Origin: Basidiobolus meristosporus CBS 931.73
Taxonomy: Eukaryota; Fungi; Basidiobolomycota
DNA: 64,000 nt
NCBI GenBank assembly: GCA_002104905.1
Contig: MCFE01000155.1
Coordinates: 62,001 to 126,000 of the forward strand
Direction of reading: 5' to 3'
Both the position numbers and the translations under genes were made by a program. The notes beneath the pieces were generated by a model, which saw nothing but the letters and a program-made list of their open reading frames with translations, searched no databases and had not been told where the DNA came from. Of the stretch, positions 1,569-57,819 are shown one piece after another. The stretch's first letter is position 1. Each line of letters opens with the position of its first letter.

Positions 1569-1935
1569 TGTTGAAATATTGTACTATTTGGTATCATTCA
1601 GCAGATAATTATTCACTTAACAATTTTGGACTAGTCTTGGTCACTGTAGGACCAACTTACAGCTCTTACTTTGCCACTTTCTTCAGATCTATGATCTAAT
1701 GATTATTCCCTTATAGTCAGGATCAAATTAGCACTATTACCAAACATTATGCACTAACCCTGAAATTGTTAAAGAATTCTCCTGAATATTGAGAAACCCT
1801 CCTTACTTAGTGTTACAACTGTATCACTTCTACAAAGGTATAGATACTGAGCTTCTTTACTAATAAGCTACAGTTCAACTATTATCACTGTTTCTTGATA
1901 AGTTCCTTATATCCAAACCACTTCTTAAATTACAA
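1569..1935 (+). repeat. Copia A 5' LTR
   Basis: Direct repeat of 10555-10923; about 22 substitutions in ~367 bp by eye (~94% identity). Confidence 0.95.
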
Positions 1936-4555
1936 GTTATGAGCCCCAATTGCCTTAATCTATTCTAATGATGACTTCTACCAGCAAACAGAACAACACA
2001 AACATCTTCCTTGTAAAGGAGAGGTTTGATGGGAAGAACTACAGACTTTGGAGAATCAAGATGCAAATCCACCTTGAGGAAAGGAAGCTTTGGAATTTAG
2101 TAACAAGAAAAGAAGTTGAGCCCAAGTGAACAGCAGAAGAAGTGGAGAAGTTTCAAGAGAAGGGGAGAAAGGCCCTTAATGCCATATGTATCAATGTGCA
2201 AGATTCCTTCATTGGACAAATCCATGCCTCAAATACTGCCAAAGCAGCAAGGGAATCCTTAGAGAAGATCTTTAGAGCAAAGTCAGTATCAAGCAAGCTT
2301 CATTTAAAACAAAAGTTCTTTAACATGAGGAATAAACCAGATGATGACATGCTACAACACATAACCAGAATGGAGATACTTGCAGAAGGACTTTACAGTA
2401 TCAAAGCTGGTGTAGATGATGAAGAAAAGATATTATGTCTGCTTTGCAGGCTAGCAGACAAGTATGAGCCACTCATACTTTCTTTCAAAAGTAGATAAGA
2501 CAATATGACTTTAGACTATGTCAAAGGAAGACTTCTCCATGAAGAACTCAGAGGTAATGCTCAAGCAGAGAAAATTGAAGATAATGCTTTATTCAGTTCA
2601 GAAAGGCACCCAGAAAAGAAGGGAAAGCAACAAAGCCAAAGAAAACCTGCTCAATATTGAAAGAAAATGGGCAAAAATTAGCTATGGTAACGAAAGATCA
2701 CAATACACAAGTTACAATGCAAGAACATTGTACCTGAGTATGTCAGCATTGCTGAAACTGATGAAACCAACTGGGAGACATGGCATAGGAGGCTAGGACA
2801 CATTGGGGAACAGAAACTAAAATATCAATTCCAATCAAATTGAATGTTTGTAAGGGATGCTCATATGGCAAACAAGCTAGGCAATGTTTCAGGTGCTCTG
2901 AAGGCATCAATAGCACCAAAATATTGGCTATTGTACAGTCAGACATAAGTGGCCTCATGAGAACACTGTCCTTTGGAGTCAAGAGATACTTCATGACATT
3001 TATGACAAGATATACATGGGTGTTCTTCCTCAAAACAAAGGATAAAGCTTTAGAGATGTTTAAGCACTTCAACAACATGGCAGAAACACAGACTGGGTGT
3101 AAATTGAAGGTACTACAAGGTCACAGTGGCAGAGAACTCTGTTCAAAGAAGCTTGCAACATACTGCTCATCTACTGGTATACTTCAGCAGACCATAGTCC
3201 CTCATACTCCACAGCAAAATGGAGCAGCAGAATGTGCAAATAGAACAATAGTAGAGATGGGAAGATCTATGCTGCACAATAAGGGAATGGACTACAAGTA
3301 TGGCGCTGAATCTGTTGCTACTGTGGTATATGTTAAGAACAGATGCCCAACAACAGTACTACATGATTCTACACCCTTTGAAGCATATACATGCAAAAAA
3401 CCAGATCCCCAGCACCTGAAGATCTTTGGCAGTGATGTTTTTATCACATACCTGACAAAAAATACTGAAAGTTGGAACCAAAATAGGAAAGGGATCTTTC
3501 TTGGGTATTGTGAAGATACTAAAGGGTATAGAGTGTTTGATGGCAAAATACAGAAGCTGATCAAGAGCAGGGATGTTATATATGAGGAGAAGTCAGATCA
3601 TAAAGCCACCAAAATCATTGGCCAGCTGCCTGATGATGCAATCAACACTAATGTAGAGGATATGAACCAAATTCAGCCAGATATGGAAGAAACTTCTATC
3701 AGTTCCAGATCAGAGCAAATTATCCCAGTTAGGAGATCTACCAGAATAAAAAAAGCCCCTGGATCCTGGTGGCAGACATCAAATGATCATAAAGAAGCTT
3801 ATCTTGCCTTATGTGCCAAACCTCAGAATCTGGAACAGGCAATGCAAAGTCCAGATGCTACTATTTGGCAACAAGCCATGCAGGAGGAGTACCAATGACT
3901 GATCATAGCAAAAATGTGGGAACTGGTAGATTTACCAAATGGGAGAAAGCCAATATGATGGAAATGGGTCTAGAAAATCAAGATCACCTCAAATGGTACC
4001 ATTGATAAATCCAAGGCCAGATTGGTGGCCAAGTCTATTCCCAGATCCATGGAATAGACTTTGAGTAAACATTTGCTCCGGTTGCAAAGTTTAACTCCAT
4101 TAGGTCAGTTCTAGCACTGGCAGCTGTGCACAGTCTGGATCTACCCCATATGGATGTCAAAACAGCCTTTCTAGATGGGGATTTGCAAAAAACTATATAT
4201 ATGGAGCAATCAGAAGGTTTTACCAATCCAACAGACCCCAATAAGATGTGCATGCTTAGAAAATTGTTGTATGTGCTTAAGCAGGTACCTAGAGCATGGT
4301 ATAACAAGATTAACACATATCTTGAGGAAATTGGGTTTGCTTGTAGCACTGCAGATCACAGTGTATATGTGAAACAGCTCAAAAAGGGTGTAATCATCCT
4401 AGTTCTTCATGTGGATGACCTAATTATAGCTACAAGTGACCAAGAGGCACTTAAACAGACAAAATCAAATCTCTTCAGCAAGTTTGAGATGAAAGATCCT
4501 AGAAAATTGAGCTATTTTCTTGGAATTGAAGTCAAACTTGACATACCTATGCAGA

Positions 4556-4919
4556 TGTTACAAGTCTTGGTATTAGAGTTATGAGGAATAGGAAGTTTGG
4601 CTAGTATTGTATTCACTAAAACTTGAGCTGATCTTTATTGAAATTCCAGCAGCTCCTTATATACATTTTGCCAGATCAATTGCTGACTATTGTATTTCCT
4701 AATGTAGGCTGTGACTCATGACTCATTTGATTGCATCATCATCCAATAAGATCCTACCTGATATATCTATTTCTGTCTGATAAGGATCTGCTGATACATT
4801 TGCTGACTAATGCTACTGATTTGATAGATAATACTGATATACTGAAACCCTAAATATATAACTAATTGATTTGACTAAAAACTGATCTAACTTAAACATT
4901 CAAGTGGCAGATCATAACA
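4556..4919 (-). repeat. Gypsy LTR (3'-type), left arm
   Basis: Reads TGTTATGAT...CTTGTAACA on the - strand; PPT complement TTCTCCCCTGCT at 4920-4931. Confidence 0.93.
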
Positions 4920-7900
4920 TTCTCCCCTGCTAAAGTTGCAAGGGTTCTCCTGAATATCTTTTCTTGTGATACCAATATCTTGATGGTTCAGTATTATCAG
5001 CAAGCCTTGGAAGCTTGAGTCTGTCCCTATGCACTAAGTCTTCCCAGATATTGCCTTGTTTGTCCACTAGTTGGTAAGTTGCAAATGGACATTCTCTGAT
5101 GATCTTGAATGGTCCTGTCCATTGTGGCTCAAACTTCTTCCAAGTGTTGTTTCTTAGCAATACAAAGTTCCCAACTGTCAATGCTTCTGGTGCTATAGTA
5201 TTATCAAATCTCTGCTTCATCTTTTCTGCACTTTGAAATACTTTGGTCTGTGCCTCTTGACATCTTTGTTCCAGTTGCTGGTGTCTACTTGGCTGACTGA
5301 GTTCATCTTCTGAGGTGTCTGTAAGCTTTGGTTGTGTGAGATCTCCTGGAATCCTTGGTTCACATCCATACACCAATTAAAATGGCAATTGCTGGGTGGT
5401 GTTGTGTACTCTGACTCTGCATGCAAAGAGTGCTTGGTCTATATACTCATCCCATCTACTGACAGCTCCATTTGCATACCTGGTCAGCATTTTTCCAAAT
5501 AATCCATAAATTGCTCAGTGACTCCATTAGTTCTGGAGTGATATGCCAAGGTTTCCAAGTGTCTGATCTGCTGCATTTCCAGGTAAGCTTCCAATGTCTT
5601 TGCCATAAAGTTTGCACCTCTATTGGACAGAATCTCTACAGGGCATCCAAACTTCCCAAGGATCTCATGTTAGTTGAAACTTGCAACTTCTTGCTCACTG
5701 GCTATAGGTACAGCTTTAGCCACTGGCCATTTAGTGGCATGGTCAATTGCTACTAGGATCCAATGGTTGCATTGCCTGGTAGTTGGCAGTCTTCCAATAA
5801 AGTCAATTCCCCATCTCTCAAATGGTCTTACAGGCTCCAAGGGAAAGAGTTCAACAATTCTCTGTGGTTGGCCTTGGTTGATTTGGCAATTTGGGCATGT
5901 TTTCACTAGCTTCACAATGTCATGTTTCATTCTGGGCCACCATGCTTTGGCTTTCACAAGGCAATAGGTTCCTTCAATTCCAACATGTTCATATCCATTG
6001 TGTAGCCTATGTATTAAATCCAGGCAAGAAACCTAAGGGCAATAGGCAATAGGGCTTCCATCAGCAATTTGGTAGAGTGTTTCATCCTGTGCTACAAATT
6101 TGCTGGCTTCATCCTGGATTATCTTCTTGATATCTTCAACCACCTGATCAGGAGTGGCTTGGTCCTCCAAGTACTTTAGTAATAGGCTAGGCCAATCTGA
6201 TTCATGCACCAAGTTGAGTTGTGCAACTTGATCTAATTTTTATAAGGCATCAGCAACCGTGTTGTTTTTTCCAGGGCTGTAGACAATATCCAAGTCAAAT
6301 TGCTGAATGTATTCACTCCATCTTGTCATCCTACTAGAGAGTACCTTCTGAGTAAATAGATACTTGAGGGAGGCATGATCAGTCTTTACAGTGCATTTGA
6401 CTCCATCAATATAGCTTCTCCATGTCTTCAAACAGTGTATTATAGCAAGCATCTCCTTCTCATCAACTGGATAGTTTTGTTCTGCTGAGTTCAGCTTCTT
6501 GGATTCAAAGGCAACAGGGTAGTCCTTTCCCTAGTGTTCTAGGCTCAACAGTCCACCAATTGCATAATCTGAAGCATCTGTGCACAGAGTAAACTCTTAT
6601 CTGAAGTCAGGTATTCTTAAGCTTGGCAGCTTAACAAGTTCATTCTTGAGTATCTGGAAGGCAGTCTCACAAGCTATGTCCCACTTGTAGGTATTGTCAT
6701 TCTTGAGGATATCAGTTAAAGGGGCTGCAATACTTGCAAAGGACTTGACAAATCTCCAATAATAGGAAACCATTCCAAGGAACAATCTGAGCTCTGATAT
6801 GTTATGGGACTGCTTCAGATTCTTGATAACTTCAACCTTCTTATGGTCTAAGGTTACTCCTGTGCTAGTCACTATATGTCCCAGATATTCAATGTGATCC
6901 TTGAAGAATTAACACTTGGGTAGCTTGCCATAAAGCTTGTTCTCTTGTAGCTTCTTCAAGACCTTTTCAATGTGCACCAAGTGATCCTCTTCTGTCTTGC
7001 TGTATATCAGTATATCATCTAGGTAGATTATGACAAACTTGTCTAAGTACTCCTGGAAGACAGTTTGCATCAGGGTCATGAATGTTACAGGGGCATTGGT
7101 GAGTCCAAAACTCATGACTAAGTACTTGTAATATCCATATCTGGTCCTGAATGCTGTCTTAGGGATGTCTCCTGGCTTCACCCTAATCTGGATGTATCCT
7201 GACATGAGGTCAATCTTGCTGAAAATAGTGGCTCCATTGAGTTGGTCCAAGAGCTCATCAATCCACAGTATGGGGTACTTATTCTGCACTGTAACTGAGT
7301 TGAGGGCTCTGTAGTCAATGCACATCCTAAGTGTTCCATCCTTCTTCTTCACAAAAAGTACTGGTGCTCCCCAAGGTGACTTGCTGGGCCAGATATATCC
7401 TTGCTCCAGTAACTGATCTCCAAGTGTTAATTCTTCAAGGATCACATTGAATATCTGGGGCACATAGTGACTAGCACAGGAGTAACCATAGACCATAAGA
7501 AGGTGGAAGTAATCAAGAATCTGAAGCAGTCCCATAACATATTGGAGCTCAGATCATTCCTTGAAATGGTTTCCTATTATTGGAGATGTGTTAAGTCTTT
7601 TGCAAGTATTGCAGCACCTTTAGCTGATATACTCAAGAAAGACAATACCTACAAGTGGGACATAGCTTGTGAGACTGCATTCCAGATACTCAAGAATGAA
7701 CTTGTTAAGCTGCCAAGCTTAAGAATACCAGACTTCAGAAAAGAGTCCACCCTGTGCACAGATGCTTCAGATTATTCAATTGGTGGAGTGTTGAGCCAAG
7801 AACACAAGGGAAAGGACTACCCTGTTGCCTTTGAATCCAAGAAACTGAACTCAGCAGAACAAAACTATCCAGTTGATGAGAAGGAGATGCTTGCTATAAT

Positions 7901-9419
7901 ACACTGTTTGAAGACATGGAGATGCTATATTGAAGGAGTCAAATGCACTGTAAAAACTGATCATGCCTCCCTCAAGTATCTATTTACTCAGAAGGTACTC
8001 TCTAGTAGGATGACAAGATGGAGTGAATACATTCAGCAATTTGACTTGGATATTGTCTACAGCCCTGGAAAAAACAACATGGTTGCTGATGCCTTATCAA
8101 AATTAGATCAAGTTGCACAACTCAACTTGGTGCATGAATCAGATTGGCCTAGCATATTACCAAAGTACTTAAAGGACCAAGCCATTCCTAATAAGGTGGA
8201 TGAAGATATCAATAAGATAATCCTGGATGAAGCCAGCAGATTTGTAGTACAGGATGAAGCACTCTACTGAATAGTTGATGTAAGCCCTATTGCCTATTGC
8301 CCTTATGTTTCTTGCCTGGATTTAATACATAAGCTACACAATGGATATGGACATCTTGGAATTGAAGAAACCTATAGTCTTCTGAAAGCCAGAGCATGGT
8401 GGCCCAGAATGAAACAAGACATTAAGAAGCTAGAGAAAACATGCCCAAATTGCCAAATCAACCAAGGCCAATCACAGATAATTGCCAAACTCTTTCCCTT
8501 GGAGCCTGTAAGACCATTTGAAAGATGGGGAATTGACTTTATTGGAAGACTGCCAACTACCAGGAAATGCAACCATTGGATCCTGGTAGCAATTGACCAT
8601 GCTACAAAATGGCCAGTGGCTAAAGCTGTATCCATAGCCAGTGAACAAGAAGTTGCAAGTTTCATCTACCATGAGATCCTTATGAAATTTGGATGCCCTG
8701 TAGAGATTCTATCCAATAGAGGTGCAAACCTTATGGCAAAGACATTGGAAGCTTACCTGGAAATGCAGCAGATCAGACACTTGGAAACCTTGGCATATCA
8801 CTCCAGAACTAATGGAGTCACTGAGCAATTTATGGATTATTTGGAAAAATGCTGACCAGGTATGCAAATGGAGCTGTCAGTAGATAGGATGAGTATATAG
8901 ACCAAGCACTCTTTGCATGCAGAGTCAGAGTACACAACACCACCCAGCAATTGCCATTTTAATTGGTGTATGGATGTGAACCAAGGATTCCAGGAGATCT
9001 CACACAACCAAAGCTTACAGACACCTCAGAAGATGAACTCAGTCAGCCAAGTAGACACCAGCAACTGGAACAAAGACGTCAAGAGGCACAGACCAAAGTA
9101 TTTCAAAGTGCAGAAAAGATGAAGCAGAGATTTGATAAAACTATAGCACCAGAAGCATTGACAGTTGGGAACTTTGTATTGCTAAGAAACAACGCTTGGA
9201 AGAAGTTTGAGCCACAATGGACAGGACCATTCAAGATCATCAGAGAATGTCCATTTGCAACTTACCAACTAGTGGACAAACAAGGCAATATCTGGGAAGA
9301 CTCAGTGCATAGGGACAGACTCAAGCTTGCAAGACTTGCTGATAATACTGAACCATCAAGGTATTGGTATCATAAGAAAAGAGATTCAGGAGAACTCTCT
9401 CAACTTTAGCAGGGGAGAA

Positions 9420-9787
9420 TGTTATGATCTGCCACTTGAATGTTTAAGTTAGATCAGTTTTTAGTCAAATCAATTAGTAGTATATTTAGGGTTTCAGTAT
9501 ATCAGTATTATCTATCAAATCAGTAGCATTAGTCAGCAAATGTATCAGCAGATCCTTATCAAATAGAAATAGATATATTAGGTAGGATCTTATTGGGTGA
9601 TGATGATGCAATCAAATGAGTCATCAGCCACAGCCTACATTAGGAAATACATTAGTCAGCAATTGATCTGGCAAAATGTATATAAGGAGCTGCTGGAATC
9701 TCAATAAAGATCAGTTCAAGTTTTAGTGAATAGAATACTAGCTAAACTCCCTATTCCTCTATAACTCTTATACCAAGACTTGTAACA
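9420..9787 (+). repeat. Gypsy LTR (3'-type), right arm
   Basis: TGTTATGAT...CTTGTAACA preceded by PPT AGCAGGGGAGAA (9408-9419); about 14 substitutions and 2 indels versus the left LTR by eye. Confidence 0.93.
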
Positions 9788-10554
9788 CAGCTACTCTCAT
9801 GGACAACAACCTGAAATTAAGCAAATCTCAGCCCGTTATATATAAAAATGGCTCAAATATGGACCAAAATTTTCCCTATCAATCAATGGTTGGTAGCCTA
9901 ATGTACTTGATGGAGTCTACATGTCCAGATATTGCAGTGGCAGTTGGAATGGTCAGTCAATTCATGCAGAATTATGGACCTGATCAAATTGAAGCAGTTA
10001 AGCAGATTTTCAGATATCTACAAGGTACCATAAATATGGTACTGGAATACTCTGGATCAGCTAATAGGCAAAAATTTGATGGTTATAGTCATTGAGATTG
10101 GGGTGGGGATCTGATTGACAGATGCTCTACCACAGGATATGTATATTTTTGTGCTGGTGCAGCTGTTACTTGGAATTGCAAGAAACAGCCAACTGTGGCC
10201 CTATCTACAACTGAAGCTGAATATATGGCTGCATGTCTAGCAACCATGGAGGCTATATGGCTACAAAAATTATTCAAGGACTTAGGTTAAAGTTTGGATG
10301 AACCAACATGCATTTACAAGGATAATCAAAGTTTTGTTTCATTAGCTAGAAATCCTACTAATCATCCCAGAACTAAGCACATTGATTTACAGCATCACTT
10401 TGTGAGGGAAGTTGTAGAAAATAACTTAGCAGAGTTAGTGTACTGCCCAACTAGCAAAATGGTGGCAGATATATTGACAAAACCACTAGCTAGGCCTCTA
10501 TTCAAGAGTTTCAGGGAGGAATTAGGATTAAGAAATTATTTAGCCAAGGGGGAG

Positions 10555-10923
10555 TGTTGAAATATTGTACTATTTGGTATCATTCAGCAGATAATTATTC
10601 ACTTAACAATTCTGGACTAGTCTTGGTCACTGTGGGGCTAATTTACAGCTCTAGCTTTGCCACTTTCTTCAGATCTATGATCTCATGATTATTCCCTTAG
10701 AGTCAGGATCAAATTAGCACTATTACCAAACATTATGTACTAACCCTGAAACTGTTACAGAATGCTCCTGAATATTGAGAAACCCTCCTTACTTAGTGTT
10801 ACAACTGTATTACTTCTACAAAGGTATAAATACTGAGCTTCTGTACTAATAAACTACAGTTCAGCTATTATCACTATTTCTTGATAAGTTCCTTATATCA
10901 AAATCACTTTTTAAATTACAACA
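10555..10923 (+). repeat. Copia A 3' LTR
   Basis: Starts TGTTGAAATATTG right after the PPT, ends ACAACA, followed by TSD CTCCT. Confidence 0.95.
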
Positions 10924-10928
10924 CTCCT

Positions 10929-11954
10929 ACCACTTGAATATTTGCCTACAACAAGTCATGATATTGTGCAACTGGTCTCACCCATATTCTTTGCAAACCA
11001 TGGCTTTATCTGCAGCTTAATATTCAGACACCAACAAGCCCTATGAGTCCCCCAGCTGCTGAGCATGCACTAACAAGTCTAGAAATCCAAGAAACACTCA
11101 AGAAAGAATCATGCTTAGCCCATGGGTGGTACAAGATGCTTGTAGACAACAAGCAATAGCCTAGCCCTGAGCTTGATGAAGAAGATATTAGTATGGCTCT
11201 TGAGAGGAAACATTGTAACCAGCTACCCTTGCAACATATTAGACTACAAGAAATTTGGTCCATTCAAGATTGAGAAGAAACTTGGTACAATTGTATGTAG
11301 GCTACAGTTGCTACCAAGTATCCCTGACACATCCCTGGATTCCACCCAAAACCACTCCATGAAAGTTCTCTATCCAGCTAACACCTAGCAAATTGCCAGC
11401 CATCCAAGTAGACAAACACCAAGAGCCTGAAGTTGAGCAAGTGCTGGACTCAAAGTACATTGGGTCCCAAATTCACTATTTAGTAGATGGAGTTGGTTAC
11501 CACCCAAATGCTCAAACTTTGGAACCAGCAGCAAACCTCACCAACTGCCAAGATCTAGTTATACTTCTCCACCAGATATTCCTAGACATGCCAAGACCCT
11601 AAGCATATGTACAGCCCATCAAAAGAGGAGAATAGTAGCAAGATAACATGACATCTTTGGTGTCTGATGATCATGCTAAATCAAGTTGGTGAAGTAATCC
11701 TAGTTGCTTCTAAAAAGTTCTAATATATACTAGGAACTTCTTGAAAGACCCAAGTGAATATTACACAATGCAACATTATGTGGAATCTTCCCATTAGATT
11801 TAGGTAGTTTCTTAGCTTATATAACAGTTGAATGTCAGATGACCTAGGAACATGATAAGCTGACCCCTGGCATATCCCCATTGATATTCTAGTCTGTTCT
11901 TCAGTTTACTTCTAACTTGGCAGAGCCATTGTGCCTCATCCCACAACCACAACA
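10929..11954 (+). mobile_element. Right part of the host Gypsy chromovirus: integrase end, chromodomain, PPT and probable 3' LTR (~11634-11954)
   Basis: Integrase C-terminus (FGPFKIEKK) and a decayed chromodomain at 11393-11602 (EPEVEQVLDSK...HYLVDGVGY...TLEPAANL). Purine tract AAAAGAGGAGAATA at 11621 is followed by an LTR-like segment ending ACAACA; LTR limits approximate. Confidence 0.8.
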
Positions 11955-16100: not shown

Positions 16101-16907
16101 CATGCAATTGTGGTTAAGGAAGCTTTTTAAAGATTTAGGCTTATGTCAAAAAATGCCTAATACTTTATTTCAAGATAATCAAGGATGTATCCAATTAGAT
16201 AGAATTCCAACTTTTCATGCTAGAACTAAGCACATAAATATTAGTCAAGAGAAGCAATGTGGTTAAGAAAGAATTGTAAAAACTAAGGCTTATGTCAAAA
16301 AATACCTATTACCATATTTCAAGATAATGAAGAATGTATACAATTAGGCAGAAATCCAACTTCTCATGCTAGAACTAAGCACATAGAGATTTGGCATCAC
16401 TTCATACATGAAACTATAGAAAATCACTTAGTTAGCCTAGTTTACTGTCCAACAGATGAAATGATTGCAGTTGTATTTACAAAACCATTAGCTTGAGACA
16501 AATTTGATTGTTTTAGGTTAAATTAGGACTAGTCAGTATAAACATTCAGTACAGTGGGAGTGTTGTAAGAATTTATAAATCCACCTGAATATTACCTAAC
16601 TTGGTACTTAGAGCATTACCTAAAGATCTCAGAGAATACTGACCAAGTTCCTTGTTGGGATTTACTTCAAATATTCTCACCTGAATATCATGTACCCAGA
16701 ACATGAAAGTTGGATAAGTTGGCCAAACAGCCCCAAACCTTGCACACATGCTCTTGGGACCTTTTTAAGCCTATCTTATGTGATTATTATGCCAAGATCA
16801 TGTGAAAGTATAAATACTACTATTACTTTCAATAGATCATTAAGTGAAAACCACATAATCTACTTGTACTCCCAATAACTGCCAATATCTCCAAGACTCT
16901 TACAACA
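16100..16907 (+). mobile_element. Copia B 3' end: RNase H fragment (partly duplicated), PPT and LTR (16561-16907)
   Basis: WLRKLFKDLG...FQDNQGCI...HARTKHI motif, then YCPTDEMIAVVFTKPL. PPT AGTGGGAG; LTR bounded by the 9-bp inverted termini TGTTGTAAG / CTTACAACA. Confidence 0.88.
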
Positions 16908-26967: not shown

Positions 26968-27066
26968 AGGCGAGGTTGCCAAGTCAAAAACTCGCACTTT
27001 ACCTTCCTAGTTTTGATAACAGGGTTCTACATTTGCAACAAATTTGAAAATACCAATACTATCATC

Positions 27067-27840
27067 ATGACTGGATTCAAACTTTTCAACACCATGACCC
27101 TCTTGGTTGCTGCCCTGTCTGCTACTCAAGTCTACTCTGCTCCTGTTCAGAACGAAGCTGGCCTTCGTATGACCAAGCGCGCATCATTCACCGGAGATGC
27201 CACCTACTACGATCCTGGACTTGGATCCTGCGAGTTGACCTCCACCGCCAACGAGTTGATCGCCGCCTTGAATGCACCACAGTACGGCAGCTTCCCCCGT
27301 CCGAGCAACAGCCCGGCTTGCTCCAGCTGCGCCATGGTGCAAGGACCAAAGGGTAGCGTTAAGGTGAAGATTGTCGACAAGTGCCCATCCTGCAAGCATG
27401 GAGATCTCGACCTTAGCCCCGCCGCATTCGACAGAATCGCTGATCAGGCTCAAGGTCGCGTCACCATTACTTGGAGCTATGTCTCCTGCGGAGGTGGAAG
27501 CTCCGAGGCTCCCTCCAAGGACACTACTACGGATAAGAACGGTAGTGGATCCAAGGACCAAGAATCGGGAGATAAGAACACCTCTTCTGGCAGCAATCAA
27601 GAATCGGGTAACAAGGAAACTGTAGAGAAGCCCAAGAACGACGCTACTACTGGTAGTACCAATAGCAGCAGCAGCTCGGGATCATCCTCTGGAAGCTGCA
27701 ATTTCCACAGAAGATGTGTCAGTGCTGGACAAACCCCAGAATTCGAAACCTGCGTTCATAATCACATTAGAAAGCAAACATGCGCCAATGGCACCGTATG
27801 CAAGTCTAGTGGTGATGACATTATCTGCACATGGGCATAA
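27067..27840 (+). CDS. Secreted expansin-like protein 1 (RlpA/DPBB domain, S/T/G linker, 6-Cys CBM19-like domain), 257 aa, intronless
   Basis: Signal peptide and KR site; GDATYYDPGLGSC...VKIVDKCPSC...DLDLSPAAF DPBB motifs; C-terminal Cx5Cx11Cx9Cx2GTxCx8C-TW. Confidence 0.9.
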   Translation: MTGFKLFNTMTLLVAALSATQVYSAPVQNEAGLRMTKRASFTGDATYYDPGLGSCELTSTANELIAALNAPQYGSFPRPSNSPACSSCAMVQGPKGSVKVKIVDKCPSCKHGDLDLSPAAFDRIADQAQGRVTITWSYVSCGGGSSEAPSKDTTTDKNGSGSKDQESGDKNTSSGSNQESGNKETVEKPKNDATTGSTNSSSSSGSSSGSCNFHRRCVSAGQTPEFETCVHNHIRKQTCANGTVCKSSGDDIICTWA

Positions 27841-28914: not shown

Positions 28915-29012
28915 GACAGACGTTGGCAGTATTCAACTCACACTTCGCCTTCCTAGTTTTGATAACAGGATCCTCTATTCGCAACAAATTTGAAAATACC
29001 AATACTATCATC

Positions 29013-29786
29013 ATGACTGGATTCAAACTTTTCAACACCATGACCCTCTTGGTTGCTGCCCTGTCTGCTACTCAAGTCTACTCTGCTCCTGTTCAGAACG
29101 AAGCTGGCCTTCGTATGACCAAGCGCGCATCATTCACCGGAGATGCCACCTACTACGATCCTGGACTTGGATCCTGCGAGTTGACCTCCACCGCCAACGA
29201 GTTGATCGCCGCCTTGAATGCACCACAGTACGGCAGCTTCCCCCGTCCGAGCAACAGCCCGGCTTGCTCCAGCTGCGCCATGGTGCAAGGGCCAAAGGGT
29301 AGCGTTAAGGTGAAGATTGTCGACAAGTGCCCATCCTGCAAGCATGGAGATCTCGACCTTAGCCCCGCCGCATTCGACAGAATCGCTGATCAGGCTCAAG
29401 GTCGCGTCACCATTACTTGGAGCTATGTCTCCTGCGGAGGTGGAAGCTCCGAGGCTCCCTCCAAGGACACTACTACGGATAAGAACGATAGTGGATCCAA
29501 GGACCAAGAATCGGGAGATAAGAACACCTCTTCTGGCAGCAATCAAGAATCGGGTAACAAGGAAACTGTAGAGAAGCCCAAGAACGACGCTACTACTGGT
29601 AGTACCAATAGCAGCAGCAGCTCGGGATCATCCTCTGGAAGCTGCAATTTCCACAGAAGATGTGTCAGTGCTGGACAAACCCCAGAATTCGAGACTTGCG
29701 TTCATGGCAGCGTCAAAAAGCAAACATGTGCCCGTGGCACCGTATGTAAAGCAAGTGACTCAGATATTATCTGTACCTGGGCTTAG
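29013..29786 (+). CDS. Secreted expansin-like protein 2 (paralog of copy 1, same length)
   Basis: Offset by exactly 1946 bp from copy 1; near-identical except for the last ~31 codons. Confidence 0.9.
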   Translation: MTGFKLFNTMTLLVAALSATQVYSAPVQNEAGLRMTKRASFTGDATYYDPGLGSCELTSTANELIAALNAPQYGSFPRPSNSPACSSCAMVQGPKGSVKVKIVDKCPSCKHGDLDLSPAAFDRIADQAQGRVTITWSYVSCGGGSSEAPSKDTTTDKNDSGSKDQESGDKNTSSGSNQESGNKETVEKPKNDATTGSTNSSSSSGSSSGSCNFHRRCVSAGQTPEFETCVHGSVKKQTCARGTVCKASDSDIICTWA

Positions 29787-31332: not shown

Positions 31333-32082
31333 ATGTTCAATTTCAAAATATCCGTTGCCTCCATTGCTATTGTCGCTCTTTCGGCTCTCCAGATGATTGA
31401 AACTGCCCCAGTCAACGTGCGGTCTGGTACTTCAATTTACAAGCGTGATGGATTCTCTGGAGAAGGTACTTACTATGACCCTGGCCTTGGATCTTGTGAA
31501 GTGACTTCCAGCCCAAATGAACTGATAGCCGCATTGAATGTTGCTCAATTTGGTTCTTATGCTCGCCCTAGTAACAGTCCAGCGTGCTCCAGCTGTGCTT
31601 TGGTACATGGACCACTAGGAAGCGTCCAAGTCAAGATTGTCGATATGTGTCCCGGCTGCAAGCATGGTGATCTTGATTTGAGCCCAGCTGCTTTCAATCG
31701 GATCGCTAAGCAAGCGGATGGACGTGTTCAAATTTCCTGGGAATATGTCAGTTGCGGTGGAGGTTCCCAACCCGAGAAACCTACCAAATCAGTAGCTGCC
31801 CCCAAGGAAACAGAAACCCAGGACCCCGCCCCCTCAACAAAACCCAAACCCACCAAAGATGTGAAACCCGTTGTCTCCCCAACCCCCACCAACAAGCCTG
31901 TCATCTCCAGTATTCCAAAGTCTGGTTCCGGAGCATGCACCTTCTCTGGTAGACGTTGCACTAATCCTGGACAATCCGCTGAATTTGAGGGCTGTCTTCA
32001 CGGTCGGCTGTACAAGCAGAGCTGCTCACATGGAACTGTTTGCAAAGGTGACTCGGGTGACATCGTTTGTACATGGGCCTGA
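31333..32082 (+). CDS. Secreted expansin-like protein 3 (DPBB, P/T/K linker, CBM19-like domain), 249 aa
   Basis: Same architecture and Cys spacing; diverged signal peptide and linker; ends ...GTVCKGDSGDIVCTWA. Confidence 0.9.
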   Translation: MFNFKISVASIAIVALSALQMIETAPVNVRSGTSIYKRDGFSGEGTYYDPGLGSCEVTSSPNELIAALNVAQFGSYARPSNSPACSSCALVHGPLGSVQVKIVDMCPGCKHGDLDLSPAAFNRIAKQADGRVQISWEYVSCGGGSQPEKPTKSVAAPKETETQDPAPSTKPKPTKDVKPVVSPTPTNKPVISSIPKSGSGACTFSGRRCTNPGQSAEFEGCLHGRLYKQSCSHGTVCKGDSGDIVCTWA

Positions 32083-56706: not shown

Positions 56707-57819
56707 TCAAGCGGTTTTGGGCCGCAAGTACCTCGCAGGATCAAATCTTGAAATATCTATAGAGGTTGTTTTTCCGTGTACTAGTAGCTCTGCCATTGCT
56801 AGTCCAGTAGCTGGCGCATACAATATACCCCAGCAGCTATGACCAGCTGCAATGTATAAATTGTTAATCTCAGGAACGGCACCAATAATAGGTGGACCGT
56901 GCCAAGTTTGGGGAAGATAGCAGGCCTGCTCCCTTTCTAGAACTGCTTCGTCTAAGGCAGCAGAGAGTATACCAGCGCGAGTTTTCAGGCGCATACAAGC
57001 ATCATGATCTGGTAAGATATCTGAGGGGTCTTCGGGAAGCGGGACTTTATCAATCTCTCCACACATGTAGACTCTGTTATCAGGGCGTGGATAGATCTCT
57101 GGTTCAGTTCCGTCTGACAAGGATAAGAACAAAGCGTGGCCGGAGATAGGCTTCTCTGGCACCATTACAATGCTGTGTGCCCTCTCACCGTCAATCGGTA
57201 TATCAAAAGGCATCCAGTTTGAGCAAAATTTGGTCCATGGTCCCATCGCAAGGATAACCACATCTGCAGCTATAATCGTTCCATCTACAAATACTCCTTG
57301 AGCGTTTCCTGACGAATCGTACTTTATACCTTCTACACGCCCGTGTTGCAGTTTAGCACCGCGTGTCTCAGCCTCTTGCCACAGTGTATGAGTAAAGTAG
57401 TATGGATGCACCTGCGCTGTAGTTGCTTGGCCGCCAAGGATACTTGAGCTTTTTATTACACTTCCGTTCAGCCAAGGTAAAGGCGATTCCTTGGTACCCT
57501 TGTCGCTTAAGGAGGCGGCTACAGACAAGGCCTCTAGACGACGATATCCATATCTCTCACCCCCATTCAACTTGTTCGCCAAATCGATGTGTAGGTTGAA
57601 GCTTTCCCGCGCTAGCTTATCTGTCGTGCTACCTTCGCACCAATCTAGGGCTAGAAATCCTCCAGCTTTACCCGAAGCACCACATGCTAGGGATTCTCGC
57701 TCAATTAGACATATCTCGAAATTTGTGGAATCCAACGCGCTGAGGTAATAAGCAATGGAAGCGCCAATCACACCACCCCCACATATAACTACTTTGCGAC
57801 GGTTCGCGGTATCGCTCAT
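56707..57819 (-). CDS. FAD-dependent oxidoreductase, DAO family (Tda3-like), 370 aa
   Basis: GGGVIG dinucleotide-binding motif, GASGKAGGFLA, QVHPYYF, AAGHSCWGILYAPATG. Confidence 0.92.
   Translation of the reverse strand: MSDTANRRKVVICGGGVIGASIAYYLSALDSTNFEICLIERESLACGASGKAGGFLALDWCEGSTTDKLARESFNLHIDLANKLNGGERYGYRRLEALSVAASLSDKGTKESPLPWLNGSVIKSSSILGGQATTAQVHPYYFTHTLWQEAETRGAKLQHGRVEGIKYDSSGNAQGVFVDGTIIAADVVILAMGPWTKFCSNWMPFDIPIDGERAHSIVMVPEKPISGHALFLSLSDGTEPEIYPRPDNRVYMCGEIDKVPLPEDPSDILPDHDACMRLKTRAGILSAALDEAVLEREQACYLPQTWHGPPIIGAVPEINNLYIAAGHSCWGILYAPATGLAMAELLVHGKTTSIDISRFDPARYLRPKTA

Follow-up and report, generated by a model that had tools for sequence, protein, structure and literature searches.

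Two inverted, 5′-truncated Ty3/Gypsy copies with exact U5 ends inside a Basidiobolus Copia element: a possible trace of one aberrant retrotransposition event

We analysed a 64,000-nucleotide stretch of the genome of the fungus Basidiobolus meristosporus CBS 931.73 (bases 62,001-126,000 of contig MCFE01000155.1, assembly GCA_002104905.1; hereafter the window), in which the reverse transcriptase (RT) gene of a Copia retrotransposon is interrupted by Ty3/Gypsy DNA arranged as two inverted copies. We tentatively favour, at somewhat under an even chance, a single aberrant event in which an incomplete cDNA with only one long terminal repeat (LTR) end was copied back on itself and then entered the chromosome by a non-canonical joining that cost target DNA. 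That the two arms have one origin is slightly better supported than the alternatives weighed below.

The insert consists of inverted arms at 4556-6919 and 7420-9787 around a 500-nt spacer (repeat search and BLAST; Table 1). In a global alignment the arms differ by 111 mismatches and 2 indels (95.1% identity), both indels lying within the LTR, and BLAST found no further copy of the element elsewhere in the 64-kb window. Each arm is ordered RT, RNase H, integrase, polypurine tract (PPT) and LTR, the left copy being 500 nt longer than the right. On the minus strand, the spacer and left arm together encode RT (RVT_1 profile positions 1-189 falling in the spacer), RNase H and the zinc finger, core and C-terminal part of integrase; the right arm carries the same domains on the plus strand, from the end of RT onward. 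The Pfam matches of each arm (RVT_1, RT_RNaseH, Integrase_H2C2 and rve, in that order) follow the domain order of Ty3/Gypsy elements (Metaviridae), and a protein search with the 267-aa RNase H open reading frame (ORF) gave no relative above 62% identity, the family being absent from the gene models of the assembly. Outwardly the element ends in TGTTACAAG... and ...CTTGTAACA, both of them exact unique 5′ (U5) termini of the LTR, and the PPT AGCAGGGGAGAA lies directly inside each LTR. The two LTRs (364 and 368 bp) read TGTTATG...TTGTAACA, also written TGTTATG...CTTGTAACA, and have the TG...CA ends and adjacent PPT of a Ty3/Gypsy element. Upstream of RT, neither copy has gag, protease, a primer-binding site (PBS) or a 5′ LTR, and instead of two direct LTRs with PBS, gag and protease the locus carries two inverted 3′ LTRs. 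Because the 3′ LTRs are inverted and nothing lies upstream of RT, the locus is a rearranged Ty3/Gypsy remnant and not an intact member. A DIRS-like tyrosine recombinase is likewise missing from the arms, which carry a DDE integrase (rve and Integrase_H2C2). An earlier sequence-only reading of this DNA had described the inverted arms around a 500-nt spacer, the exact LTR termini with a PPT inside each, the lack of gag, protease and PBS, and the distinction from DIRS elements; our analysis bears out this description.

Read evidence was drawn from summaries of short Logan contigs, built from public runs of one sample that is possibly the assembly's own. The inner junction 7419/7420 is spanned by a 99-nt contig (7361-7459) with 0 differences and a depth of 191, about that of single-copy DNA, and this non-homologous junction exists in real DNA. 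Depth over the Gypsy family reaches 1-5 x 10^5, vs roughly 130-190 at single-copy junctions, a ratio that corresponds to a family of ~1000-3000 copies. Contigs of other family copies diverge from the window exactly at 9787, one of them going on into a PBS-like TTGGTAGCAGCA, while contigs of other copies join or break at 4919, so that both LTR boundaries are fixed. Ordinary LTR-PBS and PPT-LTR junctions occur in the family contigs, and inverted ends are not a trait of the family. Contigs at single-copy depth link family LTR termini to family-internal positions (for example 4919 to 5285, 5573 or 9575; 9787 to 9140) and are nested self-insertions. In a further contig the LTR's U5 region (9772) runs straight into RT (7170), which marks an LTR-RT deletion derivative at another genomic site.

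Long-read and amplified libraries commonly contain fold-back chimeras, and in so highly repeated a family a chimeric read, or a mis-join between repeat copies, might have produced the structure. We consider such an assembly or library artefact very improbable: technical fold-backs give identical arms, whereas these differ at 111 sites; the junction is non-homologous, hence no repeat guided a mis-join; it recurs without mismatch in a short-read contig of single-copy depth; and the host Copia is read in one and the same frame on either side. We also considered and rejected a chromosomal inverted duplication by replication template switching or breakage-fusion. The reason is that each outer breakpoint falls precisely on the terminal base of an LTR and that the host sequence continues beyond the insert without a change of orientation. 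Both ends were defined by the ends of element DNA.

Both arms carry alleles that account for less than 1% of family depth (5237/9102, 5312/9027, 5377/8962, 5480/8859, 6238/8101 and 6464/7875), giving at least six shared rare alleles. Four of them (5237, 5312, 5377 and 5480) lie inside a tract of low divergence; the other two, 6238/8101 and 6464/7875, the latter a transversion, lie outside it, and no unusually long run of identity surrounds them. Near 6416 only two contigs are present, both at single-copy depth (159 and 127) and one per arm, which indicates a rare haplotype common to both arms with one private change. Where sampling is best, few family copies carry the alleles specific to one arm, most of these being rare (4956, 5005, 5010, 5200, 9194, 9303 and 9361). 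Over the 570 bp covered by longer family contigs (runs X3 and X4), each arm has ~6 private differences and ~10 differences are shared by the arms; this balance of private changes, 6 and 6, we count for a single event. The lack of 'other letter' rows in the read table is no proof of few private mutations, as the Copia flanks show none despite a 6% LTR divergence. In these short-contig data from one sample, the shared rare alleles and the private changes lean towards an ancestor common to the two arms and exclusive to them.

Divergence between the arms is 0.65% in 5146-5608 (3 mismatches in 463 bp; P = 0.0002), 8.1% in the adjoining 5609-6259 / 8080-8730 (P = 0.07 with the cold tract removed) and ~4-4.7% outside these cold and hot tracts. 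The cold tract is probably a product of arm-to-arm gene conversion. The arms also show 11 adjacent double substitutions over their whole length (P = 0.014); these and the hot tract could reflect mosaic templates or clustered mutation. Excluding the cold tract, arm divergence is 5.7%, below the 6.0% of the host Copia LTRs, which is consistent with nesting in Copia. The numbers of transitions and transversions (65:46), with only 8/19 C-to-T differences at CpA, carry no signature of repeat-induced point mutation (RIP), and this explanation of the differences was rejected.

Common to both arms are two stops, at 7428 and 8960 in right-arm numbering, and one frameshift close to 8850, while 5 stops are private to the left arm and 2 to the right. 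The first shared stop lies in frame in the RT motif region (KC*FF; 7428-7430 / 6909-6911). The shared stops and frameshift appear to be family-wide, because the runs report no alternative letter at 7428 at a family depth of 10^5. The amplified Gypsy family seems to be dominated by stop-carrying copies, and hence was probably amplified in trans; the source copy would have been a defective, trans-mobilised one. Between the arms, dN/dS (Nei-Gojobori) is 0.45, but a permutation that keeps substitution types gives P = 0.075, and this synonymous excess, being not significant, was not used to argue for selection or for two functional sources. The want of a significant excess, together with the new stops of each arm, fits neutral decay after a common origin.

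The inner ends of the two copies are nearly symmetric and 500 nt apart, the right arm starting at the equivalent of 6919. Self-primed cDNA is expected to show complementarity between the priming 3′ end (7419) and the fold-back site (6920 onward), which was not found: the spacer ends in ...TGATCT, which is not complementary to 6920 onward, and microhomology at 7419/7420 amounts to 0 nt on the testable side. The search for microhomology at this switch, proposed in the sequence-only reading, came back empty on that side.

At the target site, the left flank reads cct atg cag a (...LGIEVKLDIPMQ, ending ..IPMQ). Its Pfam RVT_2 match reaches position 209 of the 244 in the profile, no RVT_2 match falls in the right flank, and the host Copia is in the same reading frame and orientation on both sides of the insert. 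The left flank was searched against 1.8 billion representative proteins, and both flanks were then compared with the Copia polyproteins found. Between the two flanks these homologues have 17-26 residues (median 24; 17 comparisons), and a 25-column alignment block (...EITISQCHFIEQILQRFGMTDAKPV in one homologue) has no counterpart in the host Copia. By this comparison, ~24-25 codons (72-75 bp) of Copia RT are missing exactly at the insertion. A pre-existing Copia deletion that met the insertion site by chance would have had to coincide with the insertion point to the base. The claim that rejoining the flanks restores host codons GCA GCT fits neither the codons of the left flank nor the gap of ~24-25 RT residues in the host.

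The sequence-only reading had also put forward a target-site duplication with slight mutation, which failed as well. At 5 bp the flanks match at 0/5 positions (GCAGA vs CAGCT), and at 4 bp at 3/4 (CAGA vs CAGC), a match that arises by chance in ~5% of cases; the host frame would be lost if a duplication of 4 bp were taken out, whereas it survives simple excision of the insert. The flanks thus lack the 4-6 bp target-site duplication that concerted integration of a Ty3/Gypsy element leaves, unlike the host Copia, whose own duplication is intact at comparable age. The left ..IPMQ and right ..TLMD were also compared as a possible diverged long duplication, which was rejected (DNA identity 8/16, not significant). 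A fold-back cDNA integrated as a unit should appear as a single clean insertion, with a target-site duplication and an intact empty site, and the locus has neither. Bases lost between the flanks had been named beforehand as grounds for giving up the fold-back proposal in favour of a pair of insertions and a deletion, and ~72-75 bp of host Copia are lost. What stands of that proposal is the single origin, slightly better supported through the shared rare alleles and exact U5 ends; what falls is integration as a two-ended unit, given the missing duplication and the lost host DNA.

In the single-event reading that we favour, a defective, trans-mobilised RNA of the abundant Gypsy family would have been reverse-transcribed only to the start of RT, giving a cDNA with one integrase-competent end, the U5 end of the 3′ LTR. 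The minus-strand 3′ end (window plus strand, 7419) would have folded back to 6919 and copied its own strand to the unjoined 5′ end, where run-off would have created the second exact U5 terminus. This copying may have been snap-back self-priming by the element's own RT within the particle, or the work of a host polymerase once integrase had inserted the good end. Host repair would then have joined the second end on the deletion side of the first, which would account for both the missing target-site duplication and the missing host DNA. Afterwards each arm would have decayed by ~2.4-2.8%, with gene conversion of the ~460-bp tract. The rare alleles common to both arms, the near-symmetric inner ends and the exact outer ends speak for such an event. 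The host deletion, the lack of a regular target-site duplication and the inverted orientation of the appended element DNA are those of a one-ended insertion followed by host repair. The aberrant, often truncated end and the usual short homology of such insertions are not seen, both ends being complete and 7419/7420 without homology, although the published wording on truncated ends and junction homology is 'often' and 'usually', not always (PMC5041404). We consider it unlikely that what the chromosome preserves here is specifically a snap-back minus-strand cDNA that arose within the particle.

Several observations weigh against a single event. The absent target-site duplication and the host loss are what two insertions plus a deletion predict, and for the single-event model a non-canonical joining step must be assumed in addition. 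Neither outer end has lost a single base, a less usual outcome when the host does the joining; the fold-back point shows 0 nt of microhomology; and arm divergence is uneven, 0.65% in 5146-5608 vs 8.1% in 5609-6259. Moreover, 4 of the 6 shared rare alleles could stem from the conversion event, and the allele-sharing evidence consists of short-contig summaries from one sample.

A history of two independent insertions is the chief alternative and, in our judgement, possible though doubtful. Two members of the same family would have inserted head to head, ~72-75 bp apart in the Copia RT, and a single deletion, resolving the unstable long inverted repeat, would have taken the 5′ LTR and gag-protease region of each element, part of RT, the host DNA in between and, from each target-site duplication, the inner copy; later arm-to-arm conversion would have made parts of the arms alike. 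The absent duplication and the ~24-25 lost codons then follow without extra assumptions, and this history agrees with the perfect preservation of Copia's own 5-bp duplication, with an arm divergence of 4.9% overall that rises to 8.1% in places, and with an inner junction that, like many end-joining products, has no microhomology on the testable side. Family copies are very many (1-5 x 10^5 vs ~150 for single-copy DNA) and often lie inside or beside each other, and there are documented cases both of inverted LTR-retrotransposon tandems that arose from two insertions and of long inverted repeats being prone to deletion (PMC5932611). The difficulty lies with the at least six family-rare alleles common to the arms, among them the 6464/7875 transversion and 6238/8101, which two random members of a family of ~1000-3000 copies are not expected to share. 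To explain them, two insertions would require more than one old conversion tract, or else that a single tiny sublineage had hopped twice into the same 75 bp, and the deletion end points would have to fall by chance within 500 nt of symmetric positions.

Retroelement particles package two RNAs, and two incomplete cDNAs of one particle, each with one U5 end, might have been inserted in one event and their inner ends joined by end joining. Integrase could have synapsed the U5 ends of separate molecules, or the 3′ end of the first cDNA could have switched onto its sister. Equal extension time would explain the similar arm lengths, differing RNAs and copy-choice mosaics would explain the cold and hot tracts, and a single source locus for both RNAs would account for the rare alleles that the arms share. 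Concerted insertion of two ends should, however, leave a 4-6 bp duplication and no target loss, neither of which is seen, and on the present data this account and the fold-back model look alike. We regard it as quite improbable.

Table 1. Features of the inverted Gypsy insert and of its Copia host, numbered from the first base of the window.
Feature	Position	Strand	Remarks
Left-arm LTR	4556-4919	-	364 bp; U5 terminus 4556 abuts host DNA
Left-arm PPT	4920-4931	-	AGCAGGGGAGAA
Left-arm coding part	4932-6919	-	End of RT, RNase H, integrase (Zn finger, core, C-terminal part)
Low-divergence tract	5146-5608		Partner in right arm 8731-9193; 3 mismatches in 463 bp
Spacer	6920-7419	-	Continues left copy; RT N-terminal part; copy cut off 5′ of spacer
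Inverted junction	7419-7420		5′-truncated left copy meets right arm (start = equivalent of 6919)
Right-arm coding part	7420-9407	+	End of RT, RNase H, integrase
Right-arm PPT	9408-9419	+	
Right-arm LTR	9420-9787	+	368 bp; U5 terminus 9787 abuts host DNA
Left host flank	4552-4555	+	Copia RT frame ends ...LGIEVKLDIPMQ + first base of next codon
Right host flank	9788-9804	+	Copia frame resumes (ca) gct act ctc atg gac = ATLMD
Host Copia element	1569-10924	+	RT (RVT_2) interrupted at 4555/4556
Copia LTRs	1569-1938 and 10555-10924	+	94% identical

The host Copia is flanked by a perfect 5-bp target-site duplication, CTCCT, at 1564-1568 / 10925-10929, and its LTRs extend 3 nt past their BLAST boundaries, to 1938 and 10924, their last bases having diverged. 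The gene content of the window is fungal (an EF3 N-terminal domain, an AreA-type GATA factor and VPS13). Three tandem genes (ORFs 27013-27840, 28923-29786 and 31333-32082) encode DPBB-domain proteins, expansin or lytic transglycosylase-like, and an 850-bp stretch of the first two (26989-27836 vs 28935-29782) is 96% identical. A tandem duplication of 133 bp (16104-16236 / 16254-16385; 86% identical) is also present. An intronless gene on the minus strand, 56707-57819, encodes an FAD-dependent oxidoreductase of the DAO family; its best relatives (45-50% identity) are found in green algae, bacteria and a glomeromycete, not in close fungal relatives.

Parallels to the single-event reading exist among retroviruses. 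When integrase inserts only one end of an avian sarcoma-leukosis virus (ASLV) or HIV-1 vector, extension of the remaining 3′ end proceeds along DNA of the host or of the virus, on either strand, and host machinery completes the joining with flanking host DNA deleted or duplicated; the settings are ASLV vectors with one bad end, and HIV-1 with a suboptimal integrase inhibitor or weak integrase mutants (PMC5041404). The Gypsy locus resembles these integrations, which have appended DNA in either orientation, deletion or duplication of the host flank and no regular target-site duplication, one end looking normal and the other being completed by host enzymes (PMC5041404). It differs in that both ends are exact U5 termini and that the appended stretch duplicates 2.4 kb of the element's own sequence. 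The retroviral junctions usually, though not always, have short homology, and the Gypsy junction shows none on the testable side. The Basidiobolus locus is, furthermore, a natural fungal fossil and not an experimental provirus.

Self-priming of minus-strand DNA by RT is an established dead-end reaction, normally suppressed by nucleocapsid (PMC6088434). The proposed fold-back shares with it a minus-strand cDNA whose 3′ end folds back and is extended on itself into a dead-end hairpin, but known cases are short strong-stop hairpins made in vitro, whereas the Gypsy fold-back would have a 500-nt loop on a stem of 2.4 kb, its priming site has no visible complementarity, and its product is in a chromosome. 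Inverted tandems of LTR retrotransposons are similar in having two same-family copies, inverted, at nearly the same site, and their junctions with internal sequence are ascribed to nesting and rearrangement (PMC5932611); unlike those tandems, which consist of complete copies with identifiable junctions, the Gypsy copies have lost their 5′ halves and the intervening host DNA and share rare alleles. DIRS elements and Foldback (FB) transposons have inverted terminal repeats as well, but DIRS elements use a tyrosine recombinase and FB elements have no RT, whereas the Gypsy locus has a DDE integrase. In L1 twin priming, reportedly described by Ostertag and Kazazian in 2001, a second priming event is said to give an inverted, 5′-truncated structure. 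There too one retrotransposition event would yield an inverted and 5′-truncated product, but by target-primed reverse transcription of a non-LTR element, with no duplicated arms and usually with a target-site duplication.

If a single event is the true origin, the locus would be a natural fungal Gypsy example of an outcome known mainly from engineered retroviral vectors. If the snap-back version holds, the genome would record the frequency of abortive self-priming in an abundant, trans-mobilised Gypsy family and the way in which dead-end DNA nevertheless enters chromosomes; if two insertions and a deletion are the answer, the locus would reflect the ordinary decay of repeat-rich DNA. With 2.4-kb arms from a family of ~1000-3000 copies, the inverted repeat is a plausible source of double-stranded RNA for RNA silencing. 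Should the Copia LTR read through it, the repeat would give a long hairpin RNA against the RT-to-LTR region of the family, a plausible natural silencing trigger in the manner of maize Mu killer.

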